A DNA stretch of 64,000 bases from Kudoa neothunni (Eukaryota > Animalia > Cnidaria), in contig OZ199839.1 in NCBI GenBank assembly GCA_964304625.1, forward strand, positions 11,314,847-11,378,846. The letters run 5' to 3'. A program made the translations under genes and the position numbers. The notes beneath the pieces are model-generated. The model made no database searches and was not told the DNA's origin. It saw only the letters and a list, made by a program, of their open reading frames with translations. Shown one piece after another: positions 4,815 to 23,536 of the stretch (position 1 is its first letter; each line of letters opens with the position of its first letter).

Positions 4815-5775
4815 ACTGCGCATGCGATGTCGCAATAAATGATGACGCAAGATGAGGCTGTTTTTCTAGCTCACTATGAATCTGTTGGTCAGTTTGTCAA
4901 AATGAATGCATTTATATCTCAAGAATTATGTGCTGAAAGCGACAACGAATCTCTTTTCGACCAAATCACCCAATTAAGATTGAAAATAAAAAATTTATTG
5001 AACTACTAATAGATTGTTTTTTTTATATTTTTTTAATTTTGTATGAATTTGGTCAAAGCATCTAAATATTGTTTATTACAATTTCCAGAAATAAAAAGAT
5101 TCGGTTTCTAGCAAAACCAAATTATAAATACAATAAACATTTAATGATAATTTCTGTGAACTTGAAAAAATTCTGAACGGTTTTTAAATTTGTAAGCAAG
5201 TTAATTTTAGAATTATTACGAAATAGTTGGTATTGCAAAATACAAGTTTATTTTTTATTACAACCGGCGAGAGAAAATTTTTAAAAAATTCCCCATTTAT
5301 TGTTATATTCAAATATATTTTAATTTAATCATTCATAAAAGTTCACAATATTATGTTTAAGATTTTTAATAGTTAGAAAATAATAGTGAATACTCCTAAA
5401 TAGTTTAAAAGTCGCTACTCAGCTTTAATCTTATTGTAGGTCGAATTAAAATCTAATCGGGCCTACATCCTAAATCCACACTCTCATTGAATTTTGCTGA
5501 TCGCAATAATATTGAAAGAAGATTAAATGGATAATTTGTTGGGAAGGATTCGAGATTGATTGATTAATTATTTACATAGGAATAGCTGAAGCGTTTGTAC
5601 AGGAATAAGAGAGAATTGATTGAGGGAAAGTCGAAACTACTAACATCCTTCTCTCGTTGCTGACTAGAATCTACCAAAAAACAAGTACTGTTTAGTGGTG
5701 GATAATCAATCGGTTTTAACGAGTGTAAAATCGAACCTATTTTCAAATCAAAACAATTCTTTACACAGCATAGTC

Positions 5776-8700
5776 ATGTTTGCAAGCGAAAGTCAAACCA
5801 TTTTTCAGAATAGCACCAACATTTATATGGCTGTTGAGACGATCGATCCACATAACGACAATCTTGCTTGTGGGAACACGACTTTAATTCAACGAAACGA
5901 ATTACTCATGTTGACCACTTCATTGAACACAGCGGACGAGATGGTAGAGGTCAGAAATCTGATCACCTCCAAACACTGCCACGTTCTCAACGATCATATG
6001 GTCAGTTTCAACAGGAATTCGTGGAATGATGCCAAAATGATGGGTCACCCCTTCTACCGTGAGAACAACCATTTGTTTGGGTTTTTCAAGGCTACCAAAC
6101 CAATTTACTGTTACAACTGTTGTGATTATATATGGGGGAAATTCCACCAAACCGCTATCTGTTATTGTACATATTATCTTTTATTTTGTTAGCTTTGAAT
6201 AATTACTTAAAGTTTGTGGCGTCACCTTCCATCGACACCATTGTATGAATATTTCAGGTATACTTTGCGACAAGAATGAACAACTGAATTGCATAGATTA
6301 TGCAAATGTTATGAAGGTGAATTTTATTATTTTGTATGTGCTCTACAGTTGGTACTTACAGCCTATCGATCAATGGAGCAATAGAGATATTGTGGAGTGG
6401 ATGTTTGCCGCGAAATTCTCCCTCCTTGTAGAGCACATGATCAATGCCGATCTCAACGGGAATTCCTATATACATTATGAAAAAGACGCCTTTTTTGTAA
6501 TTTATATGATGTAAAAGATTGTAAATCAATGAATGGCAAATTTTCTGACAGAAACAGTTTTGTATTGAACCCTCAGAAAGTACTAACAATTTCTACAGTG
6601 CATTGGAATACTTGAATGGAGCCAAGTCTAACAAAAAAGTAAATATTCACTTTAAATTTGGTGATTTGATTGGGGTAGATCTTAGACGGGGTGACCACTG
6701 ATCTAGTTAATAACAATCATACCAAATTAACCAACCACAATGTGTATCCGTACAGTTTTGTTGGTGAGGTCATATGTGAAGCGTGTGAATATCCACTATT
6801 TGGCTACCATGACCAAGGTCTCCTATGTATAGGTAAATCAACTGTTTCAGTATGGTCAGTAATGTAATGACAGAGTGTATGAATTGTTTCCACAACTGGT
6901 GCTATTATGGTTGTTGTTCAATCGAATGCAAATCCAATGTTGATGCAAAAAACAAAGGTGGTTACATTTTATTCTTCCATCCTAGTTGTTTTCAAATATA
7001 ACGGAAATATCACACTTGATAGGCGTCATTATCTCTTCCATTTTGTTGAATAATGTGCCATCAGAACTGGCTGTTGAGTTAATAGAGAATATTCTTGCTA
7101 TTCTATCAACAACCAAATACAAATATAGCTGTTTGCCCCGACACATAACCACATGGGGTAACCCCATGTATGTCGAATTTGTAAGGAAAATATTTGAAGG
7201 TGGTTTTTAATAGTGAAAATTGATGATGTTGTTAACATGTGAGGTAATTTTAGAAGATCATTTGAACACTTCAAAGAATCTCCCCTCGAATAGATTGTCC
7301 ACATTTGTTTGCTTCCTCAATATGCTTTTATTCTTAATAGTAATCTTACCAAGACAACCAGGAACAAAAAGCGATTTCAATTATCTTTATTACGAATCGT
7401 GTGTTGGATCTGTTGGTATTGGCGTCGCCAACAAAATGGATCCAACCAAACTGAATTCAATGTTGTCACAACAGATTGACGATTTGACCGGTGAGCGAAG
7501 GACAATCTTATCTAAAGTGTCGAAACATTTCTTAAAGTGAGTGCGACATGATGTTTGACGATTTACCACAACATTCTTTAGAGTAAACAACGTTATCGGC
7601 ATCCAGCCATTTATATCAATATTTGCTATCCCATTGTTTACACCTCCGGCCAAATATTTCAAGTAATAAAGTTGTTAGTTTTTGATGTAAATTAGAATCT
7701 TGTTATCTTAGATGTTTCAGTTTGATTTATTCGAATTCGGGAGCTCTTCTAGAAGAATTTATCAACAATAGTATTCCATGTTATTACATTTCATTTATGT
7801 GTTTTGTTACAGAGATTATAAATCTTGAGCGTAAAATTGCCACAAACACCCAAATGAAAGAAAATGTCATAGAATATAAACGATGGTATTGGGGTCCAAT
7901 TGACAGGTGATAAGTTTAAGCTATGTTTCCGTCTAATAATACAAAACTGCAGAAACGATGCGATGAAATTATTGTCTCGACAGGTGGATCATAGTTTCAT
8001 CGTGAAAACCAACCGAAAACCGAATAGTTACACCTTATTAGTTCGGTATTTAGAGTTTATGACAATTTCTGAGATATCCATTGATTAGGGTCCATAATAA
8101 AACCAAGTCTATTGAACTTATTCGAAATCTCAAGGGGGGTGGATTCCAATTAAATCTACCTGATCAAAGTACGTTTGAGAATTTAAACGACCTCATCAAC
8201 CATTTCAACACCAATCCTATCAAGTATTCAACACATGAAAGCGTGCCAGAATTGTACTTAAAATATCCAGCTATTTCAAATGTAATAAATTTGTGACGAG
8301 TTACAACTATATATCTATTTAGAACACTGCATCACCTGTAAACAACAGCAATGATAAGTATACTCTAGAAAAACAACTTAAATCACTTACTATCAATTTA
8401 CGTTCGTTAAAAAATGAAGAAGAAACCATTAAGAACGTAATCCAACCACCATTTAACGATAAATTAAATCCAAATCATTTTCGGAATACTAGAATTTGAA
8501 CGAAATGAACATGTCACTGATGTGTGAGGAAAGGTTTTATGAATTTATACAAGATCATGTCAAGTTAAATGAGAATGTCATAAAATCCACAAGCGAATCC
8601 AATCACATTATTCTCAATAATGAGAAAAGCAAACAGGCTCTTTCAAAAAATGAAGTGTACGTTGTTAATCTTAGAGAAAACTCTAAATCCGCTATCAACG

Positions 8701-9356
8701 ATCTTCGAGCTGAAACGACCATTCTGATCGAAAATGAGACTAGAATTAAGAAAAAATGCCAAACAATCATGCATTCTATTGAAAATATTAAAGCGTTATT
8801 GTATAATTTGTCGCACATAATTTTGGAGCTCATAATATAAATTATATATTTAGAGGGGACAATTATAGCCCGCAACACAGCAACGATAATCTCAATTGTG
8901 AATGGTATGGAGGAGATATTAGCAAGTAGATGTGGTGACAGAGTGCTCGCAAATGCTATAATGCGAATTATTTTAGAGAGGAAGTAAAGAAAATTTTTTA
9001 CAATCTACCAGATGGATCTTTCCTTGTGCGTAGTAGTGATCGTGATCTCACACAAAATGTCATTTCTATCAAGTTACTTCTATATATGCAATCATAAACT
9101 TTTAAAAAAGATATCACATGCTTTAGAATGAAGGATAAAGTGATGCATTACAACATCGAATACCAAAATGACCTCTACTGCATCATAGGAAATTCGAGAC
9201 GGTTCGAATCTATTAGCAGCATGATTAATTACTACAAGGAAAATGATATTGATGGTAAATCGTGGGCCCACATGATATTTTTAAATTTTAATAGAGAATT
9301 TCCATTTGAAACTGTTACACCCAGTAGATACACGAAAAAACGATCTTTTATATTGA
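5776..9356 (+). CDS. Class IA PI3K regulatory subunit (p85-like), multi-exon: degenerate SH3, C1, SAM, C1, RhoGAP/BH-like, nSH2, iSH2 coiled coil, cSH2
   Basis: C1a HLFGFFKATKPIYCYNC...FCGVTFHRHHC; SAM-like PIDQWSNRDIVEWM; C1b HNVYPYSFVGEVICEAC...ECMNCFHNWC; nSH2 WYWGPIDR...FIVK...LKYPA; coiled coil at about 8320-8870; cSH2 DGSFLVRSS...LKLLHPV; stop at 9354-9356. The start codon is tentative. Confidence 0.85.
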
Positions 9357-12853: not shown

Positions 12854-15800
12854 ATGTCTACAAGTGTTAGGAAAAACTTCTGGCAATCCAGAACTAATGA
12901 TGGATTTGTGATTGTTTACTTTCTCATGCCGAACGGCCAAGTTATAGTGTTGGAGTGTAACGAATTGTTGACGTTGTTCGAAATCAAAATTGCTGCATTC
13001 AACGAAGCTAAAAATTATCCACTCTACAGTTTGCTGAGAGAACCGAAATTCTATAATTTCTCTTATGTCACCAACCACGGCACAATACAGGTAATCAACG
13101 AAAGTGAAGAGTCAGTTCGAAAGTTAGTCAATCTAAGAAATTTGCACAAGGCTGTATTTAAATTTGTGGAAGCTGAATTCAACGACGTAGAAAAGTATAT
13201 TCAATCACAAATATCGTCCATTATTGGAGGTGAAGTTATGTCGAGAATATCAGCATTGTCTGGTGGGGAGGAACATCGTTTCATCGCAAAATATAAGGAA
13301 ATTGTACAGAAAATGGTAATGAACCGAGATTCGAAGGTGTGGGATGAGAGACTTGCTATGGCATACCCACCAGATATAGATTTTGGTCCTGATGTGCCCA
13401 AATACGTTCAATACCAGTTACTTAATGCTTATTATAATGATGAATCCATTTAAATATACATAGATTGATTGAAGAGAAAGAGTTTAAAGTGAAATTGATG
13501 CTCGATCAAAACCATTCTACAGCCCTACTTCTCAACATCGATGACACTCCATCTACGGTGCTTCCAAAGGTGATGGGTATATTCAAAAAGAAATGCAATA
13601 TTAGCGAAGACCTCGAAGAAGTCATTTTGAAGGTGGTTGGACAGAATAGTTATTTATGCAAGGAGTACGATCCTATCAGTCATCAACTGATAGAATACCC
13701 AATTATTAGATACAAGGTAGTTGTTTAAATTTTACAATTGATATTTTAATCACTGTTACAAAGTATATACGAGAATCGATTAGAAAATACCAAACACCTC
13801 GAATAACCATTTTCAAAAAAAGCAATATCAAACTGGACTGCACTCAGCTGATTCGCCAGAAAGAACCACCGCCCGTTCCACAAAAGAACACAAAAATTGA
13901 ATCAACTCACTTATGGGATATCAAAGAAGATGAGTTTTACATCAAAATAAACAATGTTACCAATATCAATACATTGGATAAATATGTAAGAGATATATAG
14001 TGGAGAGGAATTTTAAAGTTAAAATTAATGGTGTTTAGTACGGAATAGCAGGAGCAGTATTCGTGGGTAAGGAACCCGTATCCAAAATTATCCACACTGA
14101 ATTGAAACAAGGACCTCGACTTTTTTTTAAGGAAAAAATGCATTTTGGGTTGCCAACATATGTTTATCCACGTATGGCTAAAATTTGTCTATGTTTATAT
14201 TCTACCTCTAAGCCATCAAACAAGGTATTAATAGTTTATGTTTTTTACTGCTACTACTACAAAAATAACAACTATTGTAGATTAAAAACGCCGAATCTAT
14301 TGCATGGTTAAATATAGCAATGTTTGATTTTCAGGGAAATCTAAACTTTGTCAACATTCCCACTGATAGCCAAAATTTTGATAACGACTTCAATGAATTC
14401 ACATTCTCAATGTTCAACTACGAAGAAATAACCAGTGGTGTAATTCATAAACCTATGGGACCAATCTCGTTGCCTATTCAAAATAATGATAAAATAAAAA
14501 TTAATATTTCCTACATAAATTATTCAAAAACTATAAAGGGTCCTTCGAGAGATGATGTGAGTTTGATTACTATGATCTTCATATCTGTTAAATTATTTTC
14601 TCCAATATATGTATATACATCAATTGTTCACTCATATACACGTTTAGTACAATACTCTGCTGAAAAACACTAAAACTAAAGATAAAAATTATTTACAGGT
14701 TAATGACTGTTAAACTGTTATATTATGAAATAAAAATATAGTTAAATTTGGGAACCGTTGTTTCTAAATATTTAGTTGACAGTGACGTAATTTTGTTTTT
14801 AGATATTTTTTAAATTTATTTATAGTCAAAATTGGATGTATGCATATGCTCAGAGAACACTAATAATCTTTATAAAATATTAGACTGCAGCGAAACGCAC
14901 ATTGAAAGCTATCAGCAAACTACATGTGTACAACTCGATAAGAAACATTCATAGCATATTTCTGTGGTCCAACTGGTAGTATAATAGTGACTGTTACAAG
15001 TATTATTTTAGTTTATTAGGAAATTAATTAGGGATCAGTATCCGCAGTTTTTGATTTTGCTCCTAAGGTCTATTGATTGGATCAACAGAGAACATATTGC
15101 TATTGTAATTTACTCCATCGATTCCCAATCAATTTACGAGCAATCTTACTTACGCTAGGTGTATGAACTGCTCGAAAATTGGCCCCTAATGAGTCCTTCT
15201 AATGCACTTGAATTACTTGGTTATTGGTATTCAGACGAATATGTAAGAGCTTATGCGGTTTCTTGTGTAAACCAGATGAGGTAAAATAATTAGTCTACCT
15301 GTATTAGTCTTTCTCCTCTCGTAAATTTTATTGAATTTAATTAAGCCTTTCACAATCGGAGGCGGTACAAATGTCATCACATAATACCTTGATTCCTTCG
15401 AGAGTTTGCTTATTTTTCTTAGAAGACTTTAAAAAATACGGAATATTTTTAAGCTTTAAATTAATTTCCACTTTGGACGGATTAATCTCAACATTCGTAT
15501 ATAATATATATCGAGATTTTTCCAAATTTATTACAAGCTTAATATTTCTATGTATTTTTAATTAGTTATTATGATAATATCATGAAATTCTCAAATAGTT
15601 ATTTAATAATAGCAGTAAATTGTATAAAATAGAGTTGCACAAATTAAGACCACCAAGCCTTACCAAGTCTTTTATATTAGCTATTTATTGGTCCGCAACA
15701 AATTTTAAATACATAAGCATTATTTTTTTAGTTTATTCATTTACACTTTTTTAAATTATCAAGGTATTAACCAAAATTTTTTAGGTTTTTTATCCTTAGG

Positions 15801-18800
15801 AGTTTTTAAAGAGCTAACAATGAATCTCAGTTTAAAAAGTGTTCGTATAATTGGTATAAAAAAGATTTATCCATTCATGAATACACAATATATTTCCGTT
15901 CTTCTAAATAAAACAAAATTATTGAATATTTAAAGTAAATGATGCTGATTAAAAACTTAATATGAAAAGTAATAGAATTATTGGTATTTATACAATTCTT
16001 ATAGATTTAATTACCATGAGTTTTTAACTTTTTAATATTCAATGTAAATATATGGATAATTTAATTAGTTATCTACATTAGATTTTTAATAGCATTATTA
16101 TTGGATTTTAAATTATTTACAATTTTATATAAATTTCTTATAAAATTTAAATAAAAAAAGAAATAACAAAAAAATTCTCGTTGGAATTTTTAAACAAAAA
16201 TACACTGAAATCTGGATATTCGCCCGGTTAACATGTTGTGTCGATTTATTTACATAATAAAATTAATTCTTCTGCATTTAATTTAAGTTTTTATTTGATT
16301 AAAACAACAAAATGGCATAAATAGTGTATTATTTCAAGTTAAAAACGCATTCGTTTTAATTTTGAAAGGAAATGTGTTTATGGACGACGAATTAACTTTT
16401 GAATTTTCATGAGTAATCTAATATAATAATTAAATAGCTAATTAATGAAATTAAATTACATGACTATTATCTCAATCAGTGGTGCACAAACTTTTGGAGC
16501 CTCGGGCCAAATTTTACTTTTCGAAAACTTCCAGGGCCAGAAAATTTTAAAACCAAGTTATAGCTCACACTTTGTATAGGTTAATTAATTCCAAAACGCA
16601 ATATTCACAATAATTCAAGAATAATAAGTTTATTAAATGTTCTAAATTGAATAATTATTGACATAGCGAACTAATGATAGACATTCGCGTGGATTTTGCT
16701 ATTGGCCCGAACACGTTAATTAGGCCATTAATTTAGTTTTAGTTAACTCAAAAAACATTAAAATTGTATTATTAAACTATATATCATGAATGGAATTATT
16801 TTTAAATGGGTATCAAATCTATAAGATTCATTTTTGTTGTATATATCAGAAAAGACATGGAATTATTTATTATTAATAGGAACTAGATGCACACACAAAA
16901 ATAAAGTGCAATATATCTTGATGATGTATTTTTTAAAAGCTCATTTTTATTTCCAGTAAATTGGCATAAAATATTCTAGAGTATAACTATTGATATTTCA
17001 TGAATATCGTACTTTAGAATTTCACCTGATCTTCGAGATATGGAGGGGGATATTACAAACCAAAAATTATAAGAAATATTGAATTATTTTCGATTTGTAT
17101 TACATTAGCAGTGGAAATTGTTTATCATAATTTTACTTATATTATTTTGAGTAACTTGAGAAAACTTTACAACAATAATTAGCATAGCGGTCATGTACCG
17201 TTTAAAAGAAGAAAATCGAATGAGACTGTAGATAAGTTTACATTTTTTCTTAATACTCTAAATTTTCGTTATTTTTAAAGCAATCGATTGTTCGAGAGCT
17301 AAATGGTTTTCTGTATTTTATGCTCTGACATTTTGTATCGTTCACGATGCCAATACTTATGTGTTGGATTAACGCTAATGCTTTGGCATTTAAAATGACT
17401 CCATTCAACACAAAATGTCATAACCAATTACTGAATCATCATTTGACAAATCTTTTTTACAGATATTGCCCTTGTATCCAACAGTTGTATTTTGCTTTGA
17501 AGATTGCTTAAGATTGAATGGAGCATCTTTGCTAACATAAGTGGGTATCTTATTTAATGGAATTTTCGATTAATAACCGTAACAGCGAGATCTTTACTAA
17601 TAAACCAAATAAGAATGTCTGAAAAGAACTATATTATTCCAGTTTATAATAGAGTTATTCGAATTTTTGTTTCTCTATTATATTAAAAACCGATTTGTTG
17701 TAATAAGGTGATTTTTGTTTAATTACAGTTGAAAGAACTAATTCTGAAACAAATATAAACCAATAAATATCTTATATGAAACCTGAAATCTTATTATTTA
17801 TAAATATGTCACCTTTCAACTTCTGAAATATTGTTATTCTCAACATTCTCCTAACTTGTACTAGTGTCCATTACGCAAATATTATCAGGTTAAAATTACC
17901 CACGCGCCTTTGAATATTATGAACTTAAAATGTGTTTATAAATTGAATATTTAAAAATAAATATTAAAAATTAAACGCAAATGTTACAAATAATAGTTTA
18001 ATAATAGTTATTCGTGTGACAAGATTACTTTCATATAATCACGTAATTTCAAACATAATTGACACCATCATATCCTCAAAATTTAAAAAAATACTTATAT
18101 CGTATTTATAATGGTATTTATTGTTACTTAAATTGAAATAAAACTAAAGGAATGGTCTAATTAGCATGTTCGGGCAAATAGACACTTCGCAAATAATATT
18201 CGTCCCCTGTTGAACAAAACAATATTTTTCTGTCCAGACGTCATTAAATTTTATAGTTTCACCATCAACTTTACTTTATTTAATTTCAGTCATTTAGCTT
18301 AATGATAGAATAAAAATAACATTAATTAAAGATGGGATCTACTTTGGGTGAGCGAAATGGTTGTGTGCGAATATGTGGGGTGCCGTCTAAATTGTCCTGC
18401 CAAATATACTCTATCAGTTCTAATAGATTTTTTTCCTTTGTGTCAGTTTTTTTACGTTTTATTTATTTTTCTTATAGAAGGTTTACGAAAAATTTCATTT
18501 TTACGTACAATATAAATATATTATTATTTCACATCGTTCATAAGACATACTTTAATTGTTTGTCTTAATTTAACTGAACTTGAACTTCGGATCAGCATGT
18601 TTGAGGAATTTATTAATTATAAATCCGCCCAGCACCTGTATAATTTTCTTCCCCTCTTTACACGCTCAAGGAGAAATACGTAAAATTGACACATAAACTT
18701 CTATTAACAAATATTTTCTATATAAAATAGTGAAATGGTTAATAGAAAAAAAATGTTTTGCATATTTAGAGATTTTATTGATGATGTGTTCTTAAGGGTT

Positions 18801-19572
18801 CGCGTATAATAAAAACCTCAATAAATTTTTTTAATAGATTCATTAGATGCTCCCGATATATTCAATAACTAGATAAACCAATTGAAGTTAAATGGTCGAA
18901 TGTTTTTTTTGTTTCAATTAAAAGTATACCATCAATCTGAACTTAGTTAGGGTTCAACGCGGACCACAAAAAAGCTCATTGTGGGCCGGAGTTTGTGCAC
19001 CACTGATCTAAGTAATATAATCATACACTTTTTTCTCCAACGTCATTAATAAATTAATTTATAAAGATATATTATTTTTATTAAAATCTTCGTTTTTCTA
19101 TGATTATAATATAAAAACAACATCAAAAACTTTAAAGCATATCACATCGTAACGTTGATTTTTAGTAACGTGGAATTGGAATGTTATTTGTTACAACTAA
19201 TTCAGGTTTCTTTGAAGTAAAAAAATCAAATTGTTCGATCCATAATAGGCCCTAAAATTTGAGCTATATCTCGACTGTTCGTTGGCAAATTTCCTTATTA
19301 CACGAGCTGTTCACAATCGACGAATTACTCATTTCATCTTTTGGAATTTAAAGTATAAAATTTCTTCTTAATTTTGGTCAAAATTCAAAAATTAGATCCG
19401 AAATGGGAGCTCCTAAATTTTCGGTACGATTTGGACTGTTGTTGGAAATTATTTGTCGTGGAGATTTCGGATATTGCCAAGTCCTGTTTCGTCAAGTAAT
19501 TACGACACAATCCATGAATTAATTATAGCATGATCTGATATTTTATTAAAAAAACTCTACATCACTTACATC

Positions 19573-19604
<32 letters not shown>

Positions 19605-21053
19605 TATCTATATTAATGTATAATTCATAAAGGTAGAATTCCTTGAAAGACTTGAATTCCTCTCTTCTAATATTCAAAGAGCTGGCAATCTTGATCGACA
19701 TGTAAATTCATTTTGAACTATTCCACGAATTTTTCACCTCAAAGTAGACTAGAAAATGTCTTTTTATTGAATTTGTCACCATGGCTACTAACATAGATGT
19801 TTTTCAGGACGTGGTCAATCCATTGGAACCTCGATACCACATGAGTTCGCTCAAGTAGATAGTTTATTTGGGAAGCAGCATCGTCGAAATTTCCTATTTA
19901 CAATTATTAACATTATTTGTAGAATAGAAGAATGTGACATTAAGGAATCGAAAAAGAAGCCCATATTTTTGGTATTTAAGAATATGGATCCGTTAGGGAG
20001 GGATATCAAAATATTGTTCAAATATGGAGACGGTAAAGTTTTTGACATATCTTGTTGAAGCTAATTATAAATAAACGCATAAAAAATCCAAATCTATAGA
20101 TTTACGTCAGGACATACTTACTCTACAAACTATACGAGTGATGGATCATATATGGCAAAAATCTGGTTATGATTTAAAGTAGTCGAATATCTGAGGTGAG
20201 AATTGAATGTGTATTAAACTTGGTGAATTAAGGTTAGTACCCTACAAAGTGTTAGCAAGTGGGACCAACACAGGCCTAATAGAAATAGTGGATAGCTCTT
20301 GTACATTGGGGAAGATTCAACTTAAAAAAGGTTTCAAGAAAAACACCATTTATGATTGGATAATTGAATCGAAACCGGTCAAAATGCCTGCGGAAGCAGC
20401 TCTCGAAATGTTCAAATTATCCTGCACGGCCTATTCCATCGTTACACTAGTGTTGGGTATAGGAGACCGACACAATGACAACATAATGCTGAAGCAAAAT
20501 GGCACATTATTTCACATCGATTTTGGTCATTTCTTAGGGAACTACAAGAGTTTTATGGGTATACGACGAGAAAGAGTTCCCTTTTTGTTGACTACTGATT
20601 TCTTGTTTGCAGCCACAGTTGGTTCGGACGAAGTGTCGTCTACCAAGTTCAAGGGGTTATTCGTTGTTTAACTTAATCGGTTCGATGTGAGTGAATAATA
20701 ATTCATAATGACGAAATAGGTTTCAGAAACTTTGCGAAGATGTGTACATGGCGATCAGAAAATACGGCAATCACATAGTGACATTGTTTGCTCTGATGAT
20801 CAACAGCAATCTGCCTGAATTGAACAAGCCTGACGATTTGAATTTTCTGATGAACACATTATCTTTGGGCAAAGCAAAAAAGGAATCGATCTCCTTCTTT
20901 CGTGAGAAATTCAAAGAAGCCTACAACGGAAGATGGAGCACTTATCTGAATTTTTACGCCCATAACAAACGTATTGCAAGCACTCAAACTACCTCAAACA
21001 AGATATCTGATAAAATGATGGCCGACCTCAAAAACGATATTCTAGATATATGA
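12854..21053 (+). CDS. Class IA PI3K catalytic subunit p110 (PIK3CA/B/D-like), multi-exon, with a 3.9-kb intron (15281-19165)
   Basis: Adaptor-binding domain [13 protein letters not shown]...[11 protein letters not shown], then RBD and C2 ([12 protein letters not shown]). Helical domain LKAIS...FLWS and YLLQLIQ. Intact kinase motifs [20 protein letters not shown] and HIDFGHFLG. Confidence 0.95.
16477..19005 (-). mobile_element. hAT (Buster/Charlie-type) transposon with decayed transposase, inside the p110 intron
   Basis: Perfect 16-bp TIRs CAGTGGTGCACAAACT / AGTTTGTGCACCACTG. Degenerate 8-bp TSD ATCTCAAT / ATCTAAGT (6/8). Minus-strand remnant LDGTPH..HT near 18370. Confidence 0.85.
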
Positions 21054-21748: not shown

Positions 21749-22480
21749 AGCTGCTTAAAATTAAATACAAAACTCGCGCATCACATCTAACTCTTGATAG
21801 ATACGTTAAAAAAAAGAACACATTCCGAATTTATGAATAAAATAATCAGAGCACTTCCATTAGAAAAAGTTTTAATTTCGAGTGGAGGATTTTTTTAATT
21901 TTTATAATTTGATAATTAATGCAAATCCCAATAGTTAGTCGGCTTATCGTCCACATTATAATATCAAAGCTCCGATTTATTTATAAAAGCAGTTTATCTC
22001 TACCAATATTAATCTGTGTAAAGCAATGATTATTTATAATTTAATAATTGTATATTTTTATGTTACTATTTTTATTGTGTGCTCATTGGGGTTTTTATCA
22101 TGGCGTTAAAATTTTTGTAGTTTTAGAATCGATATGGTAATTTATAGAGTTATACGCTCTAATTCCTGTAAAAATAAACAATAATTAGTTGAATATGTTA
22201 AAATATTCGTAATTTATTTTTTATCGACTTTAAAAAATTTATTACACTTTTTTAATCCTGATACGAACAATATCGTTAAACATGATTATTTAATAATATT
22301 TAATTCCTTTCATTCTTCTTGTGTGATTTAATTTATTTTTTACTTAAATCAAGATAAGTTAACTCTTGATATTCCATAACTTGTTGGGGCCAGGGAAATT
22401 TACACAATACCTGTACGTGTGCACACAATAAAAATAATTATTTATTTGAAAATATTTGTTAATTTTGTGAGGTTTCCTCA

Positions 22481-23024
22481 TTCTTTGATTCTTTGCTTAT
22501 TTGATTCTTTGCTTATTTGATTCTTTGCTTATTTGATTATTTGCTTATTTGATTATTTGCTTATTTGATTATTTGCTTATTTGATTATTTGCTTATTTGA
22601 TTATTTGCTTATTTGATTATTTGCTTATTTGATTATTTGATTATTTGCTTATTTGATTATTTGCTTATTTGATTATTTGCTTATTTGATTATTTGCTTAT
22701 TTGATTATTTGCTTATTTGATTATTTGCTTATTTGATTATTTGCTTATTTGATTATTTGCTTATTTGATTATTTGCTTATTTGATTATTTGCTTATTTGA
22801 TTATTTGCTTATTTGATTATTTGCTTATTTGATTATTTGCTTATTTGATTATTTGATTATTTGCTTATTTGATTATTTGCTTATTTGCTTATTTGCTTAT
22901 TTGATTCTTTGCTTATTTGATTCTTTGCTTATTTGATTATTTGATTATTTGATTCTTTGCTTATTTGATTCTTTGCTTATTTGATTATTTGATTCTTTGC
23001 TTATTTGATTATTTGCTTATTTGA
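22481..23024. repeat. 8-mer tandem array (TTATTTGA/TTATTTGC/TTCTTTGC) with 16-mer higher-order period
   Basis: Read directly; 544 bp, about 68 octamers. Confidence 0.97.
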
Positions 23025-23536
23025 TGTAATGAGTAACTATGAGGATTATAACAGAACTTACATATGTGCAATCAACATCAGAACAATATGGCATCACCAC
23101 CGTTAAGCTATAACTCGAGGGTTTGAACCTTATCCGCAATTATTCATTACATTATAGTGCTTGTGTATTTTAATTTTATGTTCAATATTTCTCTGAAAAG
23201 GAGTCATTTGCGGCATTTATTTTAAAGCATTTTGAAGATTAAAATGAACAAATAGTGTTGAGCAGTAATGGGAGCATCAATTTTCTCATCTTATATAAAA
23301 TGTAAATATCAAAAAAAAGGTTTCCAATTTCATATATTATTATTTCCTATCTTATCGAAATACAGTTATCCAAAAATAGGCTAAATTATAACGAATTACG
23401 CAGCATCGATAATTTACTGTAATTGTTCCATGAGTTGGATAAATTTTACGTTTTATTCCAATTTTTAATAAATTTACTAATAAAATTTTTATTTTTAACT
23501 AGAATTTATTTCAACCTATTAAGATTGTATATTTAA

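Follow-up and report, generated by a model that had tools for sequence, protein, structure and literature searches.

Acid-free helical-domain loop of a Kudoa neothunni p110 and an FLVR lysine in the predicted nSH2 domain of its neighboring adaptor gene

In the class IA phosphoinositide 3-kinases (PI3Ks) of vertebrates, and in functional terms in that of C. elegans, the helical domain of the catalytic subunit, p110, begins with an acidic loop that occupies the phosphotyrosine pocket of the N-terminal SH2 domain (nSH2) of the p85 adaptor, and the enzyme is held off until a pYxxM peptide displaces this contact. In p110beta and p110delta, an extra inhibitory contact forms between the C-terminal SH2 domain (cSH2) and the kinase domain. 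Here we describe a class IA p110 gene of Kudoa neothunni, a member of a group of intracellular muscle parasites of fish, together with the adaptor gene that lies beside it, both in a 64,000-nucleotide stretch of contig OZ199839.1 (hereafter the window; positions given without a contig prefix are positions in it). The p110 loop is basic and free of acidic residues, and the nSH2 of the adaptor has Lys at the site of the FLVR arginine; in this lineage, both sides of the canonical contact are without their defining charges.

On the nSH2 side of the human contact, R358 forms a persistent salt bridge with E542, which R340 also contacts; K379 and L380 contact E545, and K382 contacts Q546 (PMC6195558). 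More generally, the FLVR arginine of SH2 domains binds the phosphotyrosine phosphate. It is missing in just 3 human SH2 domains, and its mutation costs about 1000-fold in affinity (PMC7530234). Outside vertebrates, C. elegans AGE-1 has at E630 the equivalent of E545, the E630K substitution is a gain of function, and a Val aligns with E542 (2026; PMC13277760).

The features on the catalytic side of the contact are as follows.

12854..21053, plus strand: class IA PI3K catalytic subunit (p110) gene, 16 exons, about 1034 codons, from Pfam domains and exon junctions.
14884..14975, plus strand: exon 6 of p110, 92 nucleotides, start of the helical domain and nSH2-docking loop; no acidic residue, net charge +5.

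Within exon 6, the loop segment at 14902-14970 (+) translates into 23 residues that are the gap-free counterpart of L531-S553 of human p110alpha. Each segment has 23 residues, opening with LKAIS and closing with FLWS, and these shared ends fix the gapless alignment on either side. With the human reference taken from PDB chains and numbered from the V484 anchor, which fixes E542, T544, E545, Q546 and E547, the Kudoa residues at these five sites are S, R, N, I and H, respectively. The absence of acids extends over the whole translation of the exon (30 residues plus two bases of a Trp codon), which contains no Asp or Glu, and the 28 residues up to the conserved Trp are those that sum to the charge of +5. 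A phmmer search of the PDB with the 31-residue exon 6 alone returned no match. The initial annotation of this DNA had read the same residues against the human sequence; the PDB chains bear out the gapless alignment, and translation with the PDB numbering bears out the residues, the Arg at T544 and the lack of any acid. The acid-free stretch is a confirmed observation, and judged from sequence the exon is genuine. Beyond the loop, whose LKAIS and FLWS flanks are identical to those of human PI3Kalpha (p110alpha/p85alpha), the Kudoa enzyme shares the human domain order of adaptor-binding domain (ABD), RBD, C2, helical and kinase domains.

To place the loop among other enzymes, we compared it with 26 ABD-bearing p110 representatives recovered by search, counting positions from the conserved LW. 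Of the 26, 24 are acidic at the E547 position, 19 at the E545 position and just 11 at the E542 position, so an enzyme without E542 is nothing out of the ordinary. Of the seven that are non-acidic at E545, two come from mites; the others include a mussel record, Capsaspora (Lys and Arg at the E542 and E545 positions) and a choanoflagellate (Pro). Only one of the 26 has no acid at all in the last ten loop residues. By net charge, the window loop (+5) is the most basic of 30 sequences, most of which fall between −7 and 0 (Capsaspora, +4; the second Kudoa-like sequence described below, +2). Loss of E545 is uncommon without being unique, and a loop stripped of every acid marks the far end of the range sampled. 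The initial annotation had weighed its case against the possibility that such substitutions are common among invertebrate class IA enzymes. That possibility holds in part: E542 is non-acidic in 15 of the 26 and a Val in AGE-1, and E545 is non-acidic in 7 of the 26.

The other side of the contact is encoded by a neighboring gene.

7686..9255 (L001:2917-4240 in the second Kudoa-like sequence), plus strand: p85/p55-like adaptor gene, with nSH2, helical linker and cSH2.
7884..8281, plus strand: putative adaptor nSH2, in three exons (to 7906, 7953-8045 and 8092-8281), reading WYWGPIDR and then NDAMKLLSRQVDHSFIVKTNR...; Lys at the FLVR arginine.
8323..8890, plus strand: inter-SH2 region, predicted helical, about 150 residues spread over exons 8323-8436 and 8493-8800 and the first part of 8854-8925.
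8900..9255, plus strand: adaptor cSH2, in exons to 8925, 8977-9072 and 9127-9255; canonical DGSFLVRSS.

The adaptor gene sits directly upstream of p110, head-to-tail on the same strand and about 3.6 kb away, and its introns are canonical (45-56 nucleotides). Its N-terminal part reads WYWGPIDR, NDAMKLLSRQVDHSFIVKTNRKPNSYTLLVR and, across the next junction, VHNKTKSIELIRNLKGGGFQLNLPDQSTFENLNDLINHF...LKYP; a mostly helical stretch of about 150 residues separates this from the cSH2, EWYGGDISKEEVKKIFYNLPDGSFLVRSSDRDL.... This apparent layout of nSH2, helical linker and cSH2 is also that of human p85alpha, and we read the gene as a putative p55-type adaptor of p110.

In the nSH2, the FLVR arginine (human R358) is replaced by Lys, within FIVK in the window and SSFVVK in the second species. 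The start of WYWG and the FLVR position are 26 residues apart in Kudoa. In human nSH2 the spacing is likewise 26 residues, and the register of K379 and K382 follows from the same human sequence. The alphaA2 arginine (the R340 equivalent) is present within WYWGPIDR, and a Lys lies at or beside the K379 position, the betaD register being uncertain by one residue. The domain is marked by WYWG, the alphaA2 Arg, FIVK and YTLLVR; Pfam gave no match to it. Against the PDB, its C-terminal half matched solely SH2 domains, weakly (E 0.16-1.5), and the 30-residue nSH2 exon returned no match with phmmer. A hidden nSH2 exon carrying the FLVR Arg was looked for and rejected. The cSH2 is recognized by Pfam SH2 on each of its two halves (3.9e-4 and 3.1e-4) and scored 36.4 bits (1.7e-7) in an SH2 search of its own genome; our genome-wide searches covered 40,260,978 bases in 4 contigs. 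The adjacent adaptor gene and the nSH2 FLVR Lys, which is found in both species, are new here.

We searched for relatives with the kinase exon among 1.84 billion representatives. The closest was contig L001 (16.6 kb), which is 87% identical over the kinase exon and colinear with the window across both genes, the adaptor preceding p110 there too. A more distant full-length relative, P0002, is a transcript contig of 1062 amino acids with all five domains and 57% identity. With P0002 as query, the homologue search returned only P0002 itself, and with the kinase exon and exon 1 as queries it returned only L001 as close kin. Another candidate, P0003, flagged as contamination of a sturgeon assembly, could not serve for comparison: it is a 21-kb gene shown without neighbors.

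Exon 6 of L001 (L001:8744-8835) is again 92 nucleotides long with phases identical to those of the window exon, and reads VKTQKLFNKIHKFPVSETLNNDQNSFLWKN. It has Asn at the E545 position, as in the window, and Thr at the E542 position; its acids, a Glu at −10 and an Asp at the Q546 position, lie one residue off the canonical sites. P0002 keeps Glu at the E545 position and has His at the E547 position, as the window does. Between the window and L001, exon 6 is the least conserved p110 exon (about 29-31% identity vs. 86% for the kinase exon). Among the SH2 domains, for which the first small exon was recounted by hand, identity is 45% over the nSH2 and 71% over the cSH2, rising to 94% over the cSH2 FLVR exon.

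In two species the defining residues are gone from both sides, and the segments that held them are the least constrained of their genes. Most simply read, the nSH2 may have ceased to be a clamp that phosphotyrosine releases, and recruitment, perhaps with inhibition, would fall to the conserved cSH2. We hold this reading tentatively, at slightly under an even chance. It draws support from the lower conservation of the nSH2 (45% vs. 71% for the cSH2) and from the position of exon 6 as the least conserved part of p110. The heterodimer would then be held together by the ABD and the inter-SH2 region (iSH2), and recruitment and control would run mainly through the strongly conserved, canonical cSH2. 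The data themselves show the sequences, the gene structure, the synteny, the agreement of two species and the rarity of the loop state; that inhibition is lost and that control has moved to the cSH2 is what we infer from them. In a stronger form, which strikes us as possible but doubtful, the Kudoa lineage would have permanently dismantled the nSH2-helical brake on both partners. The enzyme would be naturally "E545K-like", and the nSH2 would either have become a module independent of phosphotyrosine or have rebuilt its contact with swapped charges.

The initial annotation had proposed that p85 is still bound, that the nSH2 brake is gone or rewired, and that the product is a de-repressed or phosphotyrosine-independent PI3K. 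Binding is plausible as a prediction, because the p85/p55-like adaptor gene sits directly upstream of p110; the ABD is retained, as had been claimed (PF02192, 2.2e-10). Retention of the C2 N345 equivalent is likewise plausible from an NxN motif (NIN here, NLN in L001), but not firm, since the C2 alignment has indels. The suggestion of a lost or rewired brake gains backing from the nSH2 Lys in the window and in L001, which falls at the R358 site whose human residue salt-bridges E542, and it too stays at the level of prediction.

Independence from phosphotyrosine, in contrast, is not supported. The cSH2 has a canonical DGSFLVRSS, with 94% identity across the FLVR-bearing exon, and SH3-SH2-tyrosine-kinase genes of Src/Csk/Abl type are retained, at least two of them, at G000:C1:14182022-14183817 (L007) and G000:C1:2464973-2466947 (L008). 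A PTEN-type C2 is also present. Since these genes are kept, phosphotyrosine signaling and a counter-enzyme to PI3K both exist in this parasite.

Several known systems resemble the Kudoa pair in part. As in the human E542K and E545K cancer mutants, the Kudoa loop is without negative charges and carries positive ones; unlike those mutants, the Kudoa change is natural and fixed and hits the equivalents of E542, E545, E547 and D549. The partner differs from that of the hotspot mutants as well, with the nSH2 FLVR Arg changed to Lys. Like C. elegans AGE-1/AAP-1, Kudoa combines a single class IA enzyme with what appears to be a p55-type adaptor whose iSH2 is unrecognizable by sequence (PMC13277760), and the E542 position is non-acidic in both. 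AGE-1, however, keeps four loop acids, with E630 a proven brake residue, whereas the Kudoa loop keeps none. In TYK2, RIN2 and SH2D5, an SH2 domain is likewise kept as a protein-protein module without the canonical FLVR arginine (PMC7530234), but those domains have His or Trp at that site, whereas the Kudoa nSH2 has a Lys that keeps the charge. Finally, the proposed shift of control to the cSH2 would resemble the cSH2 contact of p110beta and p110delta, with the difference that the nSH2 brake is also present in those enzymes and that a cSH2 contact in Kudoa is a supposition.

If the lineage has indeed dismantled this brake on both partners, nature would have run the experiment of how far p85 control can be dispensed with. 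Few regulatory switches in cancer biology have been studied as well as the E542/E545-nSH2 contact, which recent work found to operate in nematodes too, and a natural pair without its defining charges would separate what is essential in p85 control from what can be given up. Structural biologists would gain a ready-made, co-evolved pair of variants, and for myxozoan biology the pair would hint that growth signaling in reduced parasites is wired differently. The weight of all this is limited by a fast-evolving lineage and by the variability of the loop in several invertebrates and unicellular relatives.

A number of points weigh against loss of the nSH2 clamp. Many class IA enzymes vary in this loop (non-acidic at E542 in 15 and at E545 in 7 of the 26), and missing residues are no proof that inhibition is missing. 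The state described here was seen in two species only, and P0002, the nearest full-length relative, has kept its Glu at E545. Rapid protein evolution is general in myxozoans (PMC12239612). The nSH2 pocket is not obviously dead, because the Lys keeps the charge, the R340 equivalent is kept, and a Lys is found at or near the K379 position. Three metatranscriptome runs, whose label is probably that of the host, gave 0 reads on the window, which says nothing for or against the exon, and the gene models, like the reading built on them, come from sequence.

The alternative that survives best is a rewired interface, in which the nSH2 would still dock on the loop and inhibit through co-evolved residues, with phosphopeptide release handled by the alphaA2 Arg and the betaB5 Lys. 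The retained alphaA2 Arg and the charge-keeping Lys are what such a mechanism would need, and the two loops have Asn at −6, Val at −12, Lys at −15 and Ile at −17 in common. There may also be a charge swap at the position of human K382, which contacts Q546: the window has Glu there and L001 has Arg, and on the facing loops, the window has Arg at −7 and His at −4 and L001 has the Asp at the Q546 position and the Glu at −10. These correspondences come from two sequences only, however, and they depend on a betaD register that is uncertain by one residue, the HMMER alignment to Lck differing from the ungapped alignment to p85. Moreover, within their genes conservation is lowest in just these two segments, the nSH2 and exon 6, a pattern that relaxed constraint explains more readily than upkeep of an interface. 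We consider rewiring a serious rival, although on balance a doubtful one.

Ordinary drift without regulatory meaning fares less well. On this account, the loop is under little constraint beyond a subset of animals and has been randomized in a fast parasite, and inhibition by p85 through the iSH2-C2 and cSH2-kinase contacts is unchanged. The comparison set offers some encouragement, with an acid at E542 in 11 of 26 and at E545 in 19 of 26, Lys/Arg in Capsaspora and Pro in the choanoflagellate, and a Val at E542 in worm AGE-1, and fast myxozoan protein evolution is documented (PMC12239612). However, the acid at E547 is kept in 24 of 26 p110s and yet lost here, and a loop with no acid occurs in 1 of 26. 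The near-invariant FLVR arginine has also been lost in the partner nSH2 and not in the cSH2, which is hard to ascribe to undirected drift, and the E545 equivalent is a functional brake as far away as nematodes (PMC13277760). Drift as the whole explanation is therefore unlikely. Least of all do we credit an artefact of the gene model, in which exon 6 is unused or spliced otherwise, or the gene is a pseudogene: 0 RNA reads and a published annotation almost without transcript support (PMC12239612) would allow it, but it is made very improbable by canonical splice sites and phases, an exon length and phase identical in the second species, the lack of an alternative exon, 16 of 16 open exons and intact catalytic motifs.

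The remaining parts of the p110 gene are listed here in order.

12854..13416, plus strand: exon 1, ABD and linker (PF02192 PI3K_p85B, 2.2e-10; 58.5% identity to L001:6886-7464).
14281..14556, plus strand: exon 5, end of C2 and C2-helical linker, ending ...KGPSRDD in phase 0 (donor GTGAGT at 14557; 37% identity to L001).
15020..15280, plus strand: exons 7 (15020-15104) and 8 (15159-15280), helical domain (PF00613 PI3Ka, 2.6e-9 on 15159-15281).
15281..19165, plus strand: intron 8, 3.9 kb, non-coding, with nested dispersed repeats (90 genome matches for 16000-18500).
19166..20178, plus strand: exons 9-14, remaining helical domain and kinase N-lobe with DLRQD (PF00613, 2e-10 on 19249-19368; 66-94% identity to L001).
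20233..21053, plus strand: exons 15-16, kinase catalytic core (PF00454, 1.4e-31; 86% and 79% identity to L001).

Along these exons, Pfam domains follow one another over successive open segments in the order ABD, RBD, C2, PI3Ka and PI3/PI4-kinase. On exon 1, PF02192 reaches 40.5 bits (cut-off 27); the RBD scores 9.3e-6, and C2 reaches only 19.4 bits, under its cut-off of 26.4. Translation of 20207-20668 shows both catalytic motifs intact, the GDRHNDN loop (DRH) and HIDFGHFLG (DFG). All 15 of the 15 junctions lie on a frame-consistent GT-AG path, and most introns are 41-68 nucleotides long. Exon 6 lies between an AG acceptor at 14882-14883 and a GT donor at 14976-14977. Its phase-0 start fits exon 5, which ends at 14556, and its phase-2 end leaves a Trp codon that is completed by exon 7, from 15020 on.

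The initial annotation had allowed that a different splice could restore the acidic residues. No such splice was found: the introns flanking exon 6 hold no alternative exon with an xLW motif or an acidic run, and an alternative or mutually exclusive exon 6 was rejected on that basis. In the whole genome, a single ABD locus and a single PI3Ka locus exceed the curated cut-off, which points to one class IA p110. A second class IA p110 that keeps the acidic loop was rejected, since only one ABD locus exists genome-wide. We take it for an intact gene and the sole one for a class IA PI3K catalytic subunit in this myxozoan, most likely Kudoa neothunni. The published assembly of this species has 40.2 Mb in three inferred chromosomes, 30.41% G+C and a median intron of 49 bp; it came from yellowfin tuna data, and its annotation has almost no transcript support (PMC12239612). 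The window has about 30% G+C. Intron 8 measures 3.9 kb here vs. about 36 nucleotides in L001, and one of its repeat elements has inverted ends.

Between the two SH2 domains of the adaptor, the main inter-SH2 exon (exon e) was modeled with AlphaFold2 as two long helices (residues 3-32 and 36-94; mean predicted local distance difference test score, pLDDT, 78.5). It is 41% identical to its L001 counterpart. The linker had no match in PF16454, the PDB or Foldseek, and PF16454 was unmatched genome-wide too. No second iSH2-type adaptor locus was found in the genome-wide search. Of the two other loci considered as second adaptors, L009 has only a single SH2, and the tandem SH2-like locus L010 was rejected, as it resembles the adaptor only around the FLVR motif.

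The L010 gene (G000:C1:3494524-3495505; L010:3024-4005, +) has a first SH2 with DGSFLVRNS (Pfam SH2, 6e-5) and a second SH2-like stretch, PEGTYLIGNL, with Gly in place of the FLVR arginine. The other strongest PK_Tyr matches checked were a PKN, a WNK and a 407-residue kinase without visible receptor features, and no clear receptor tyrosine kinase was among the PK_Tyr matches checked.

Upstream of the nSH2, six open segments at 4839-7537 (+) are colinear with L001:586-2682 and 25-52% identical between the species. Two of them have C1-like Cys/His motifs (KPIYCYNCCDYIWGK and VICEACEYPLFGYHDQGLLC), and Pfam returned nothing for these segments, which may either extend the adaptor at its N terminus or belong to a gene of their own. 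Downstream of p110, the open segments at 22380-23100 (+) are repeats of LFAYLIICLFDYLIICLFDYLLI, and the region looks like a short tandem DNA repeat array.

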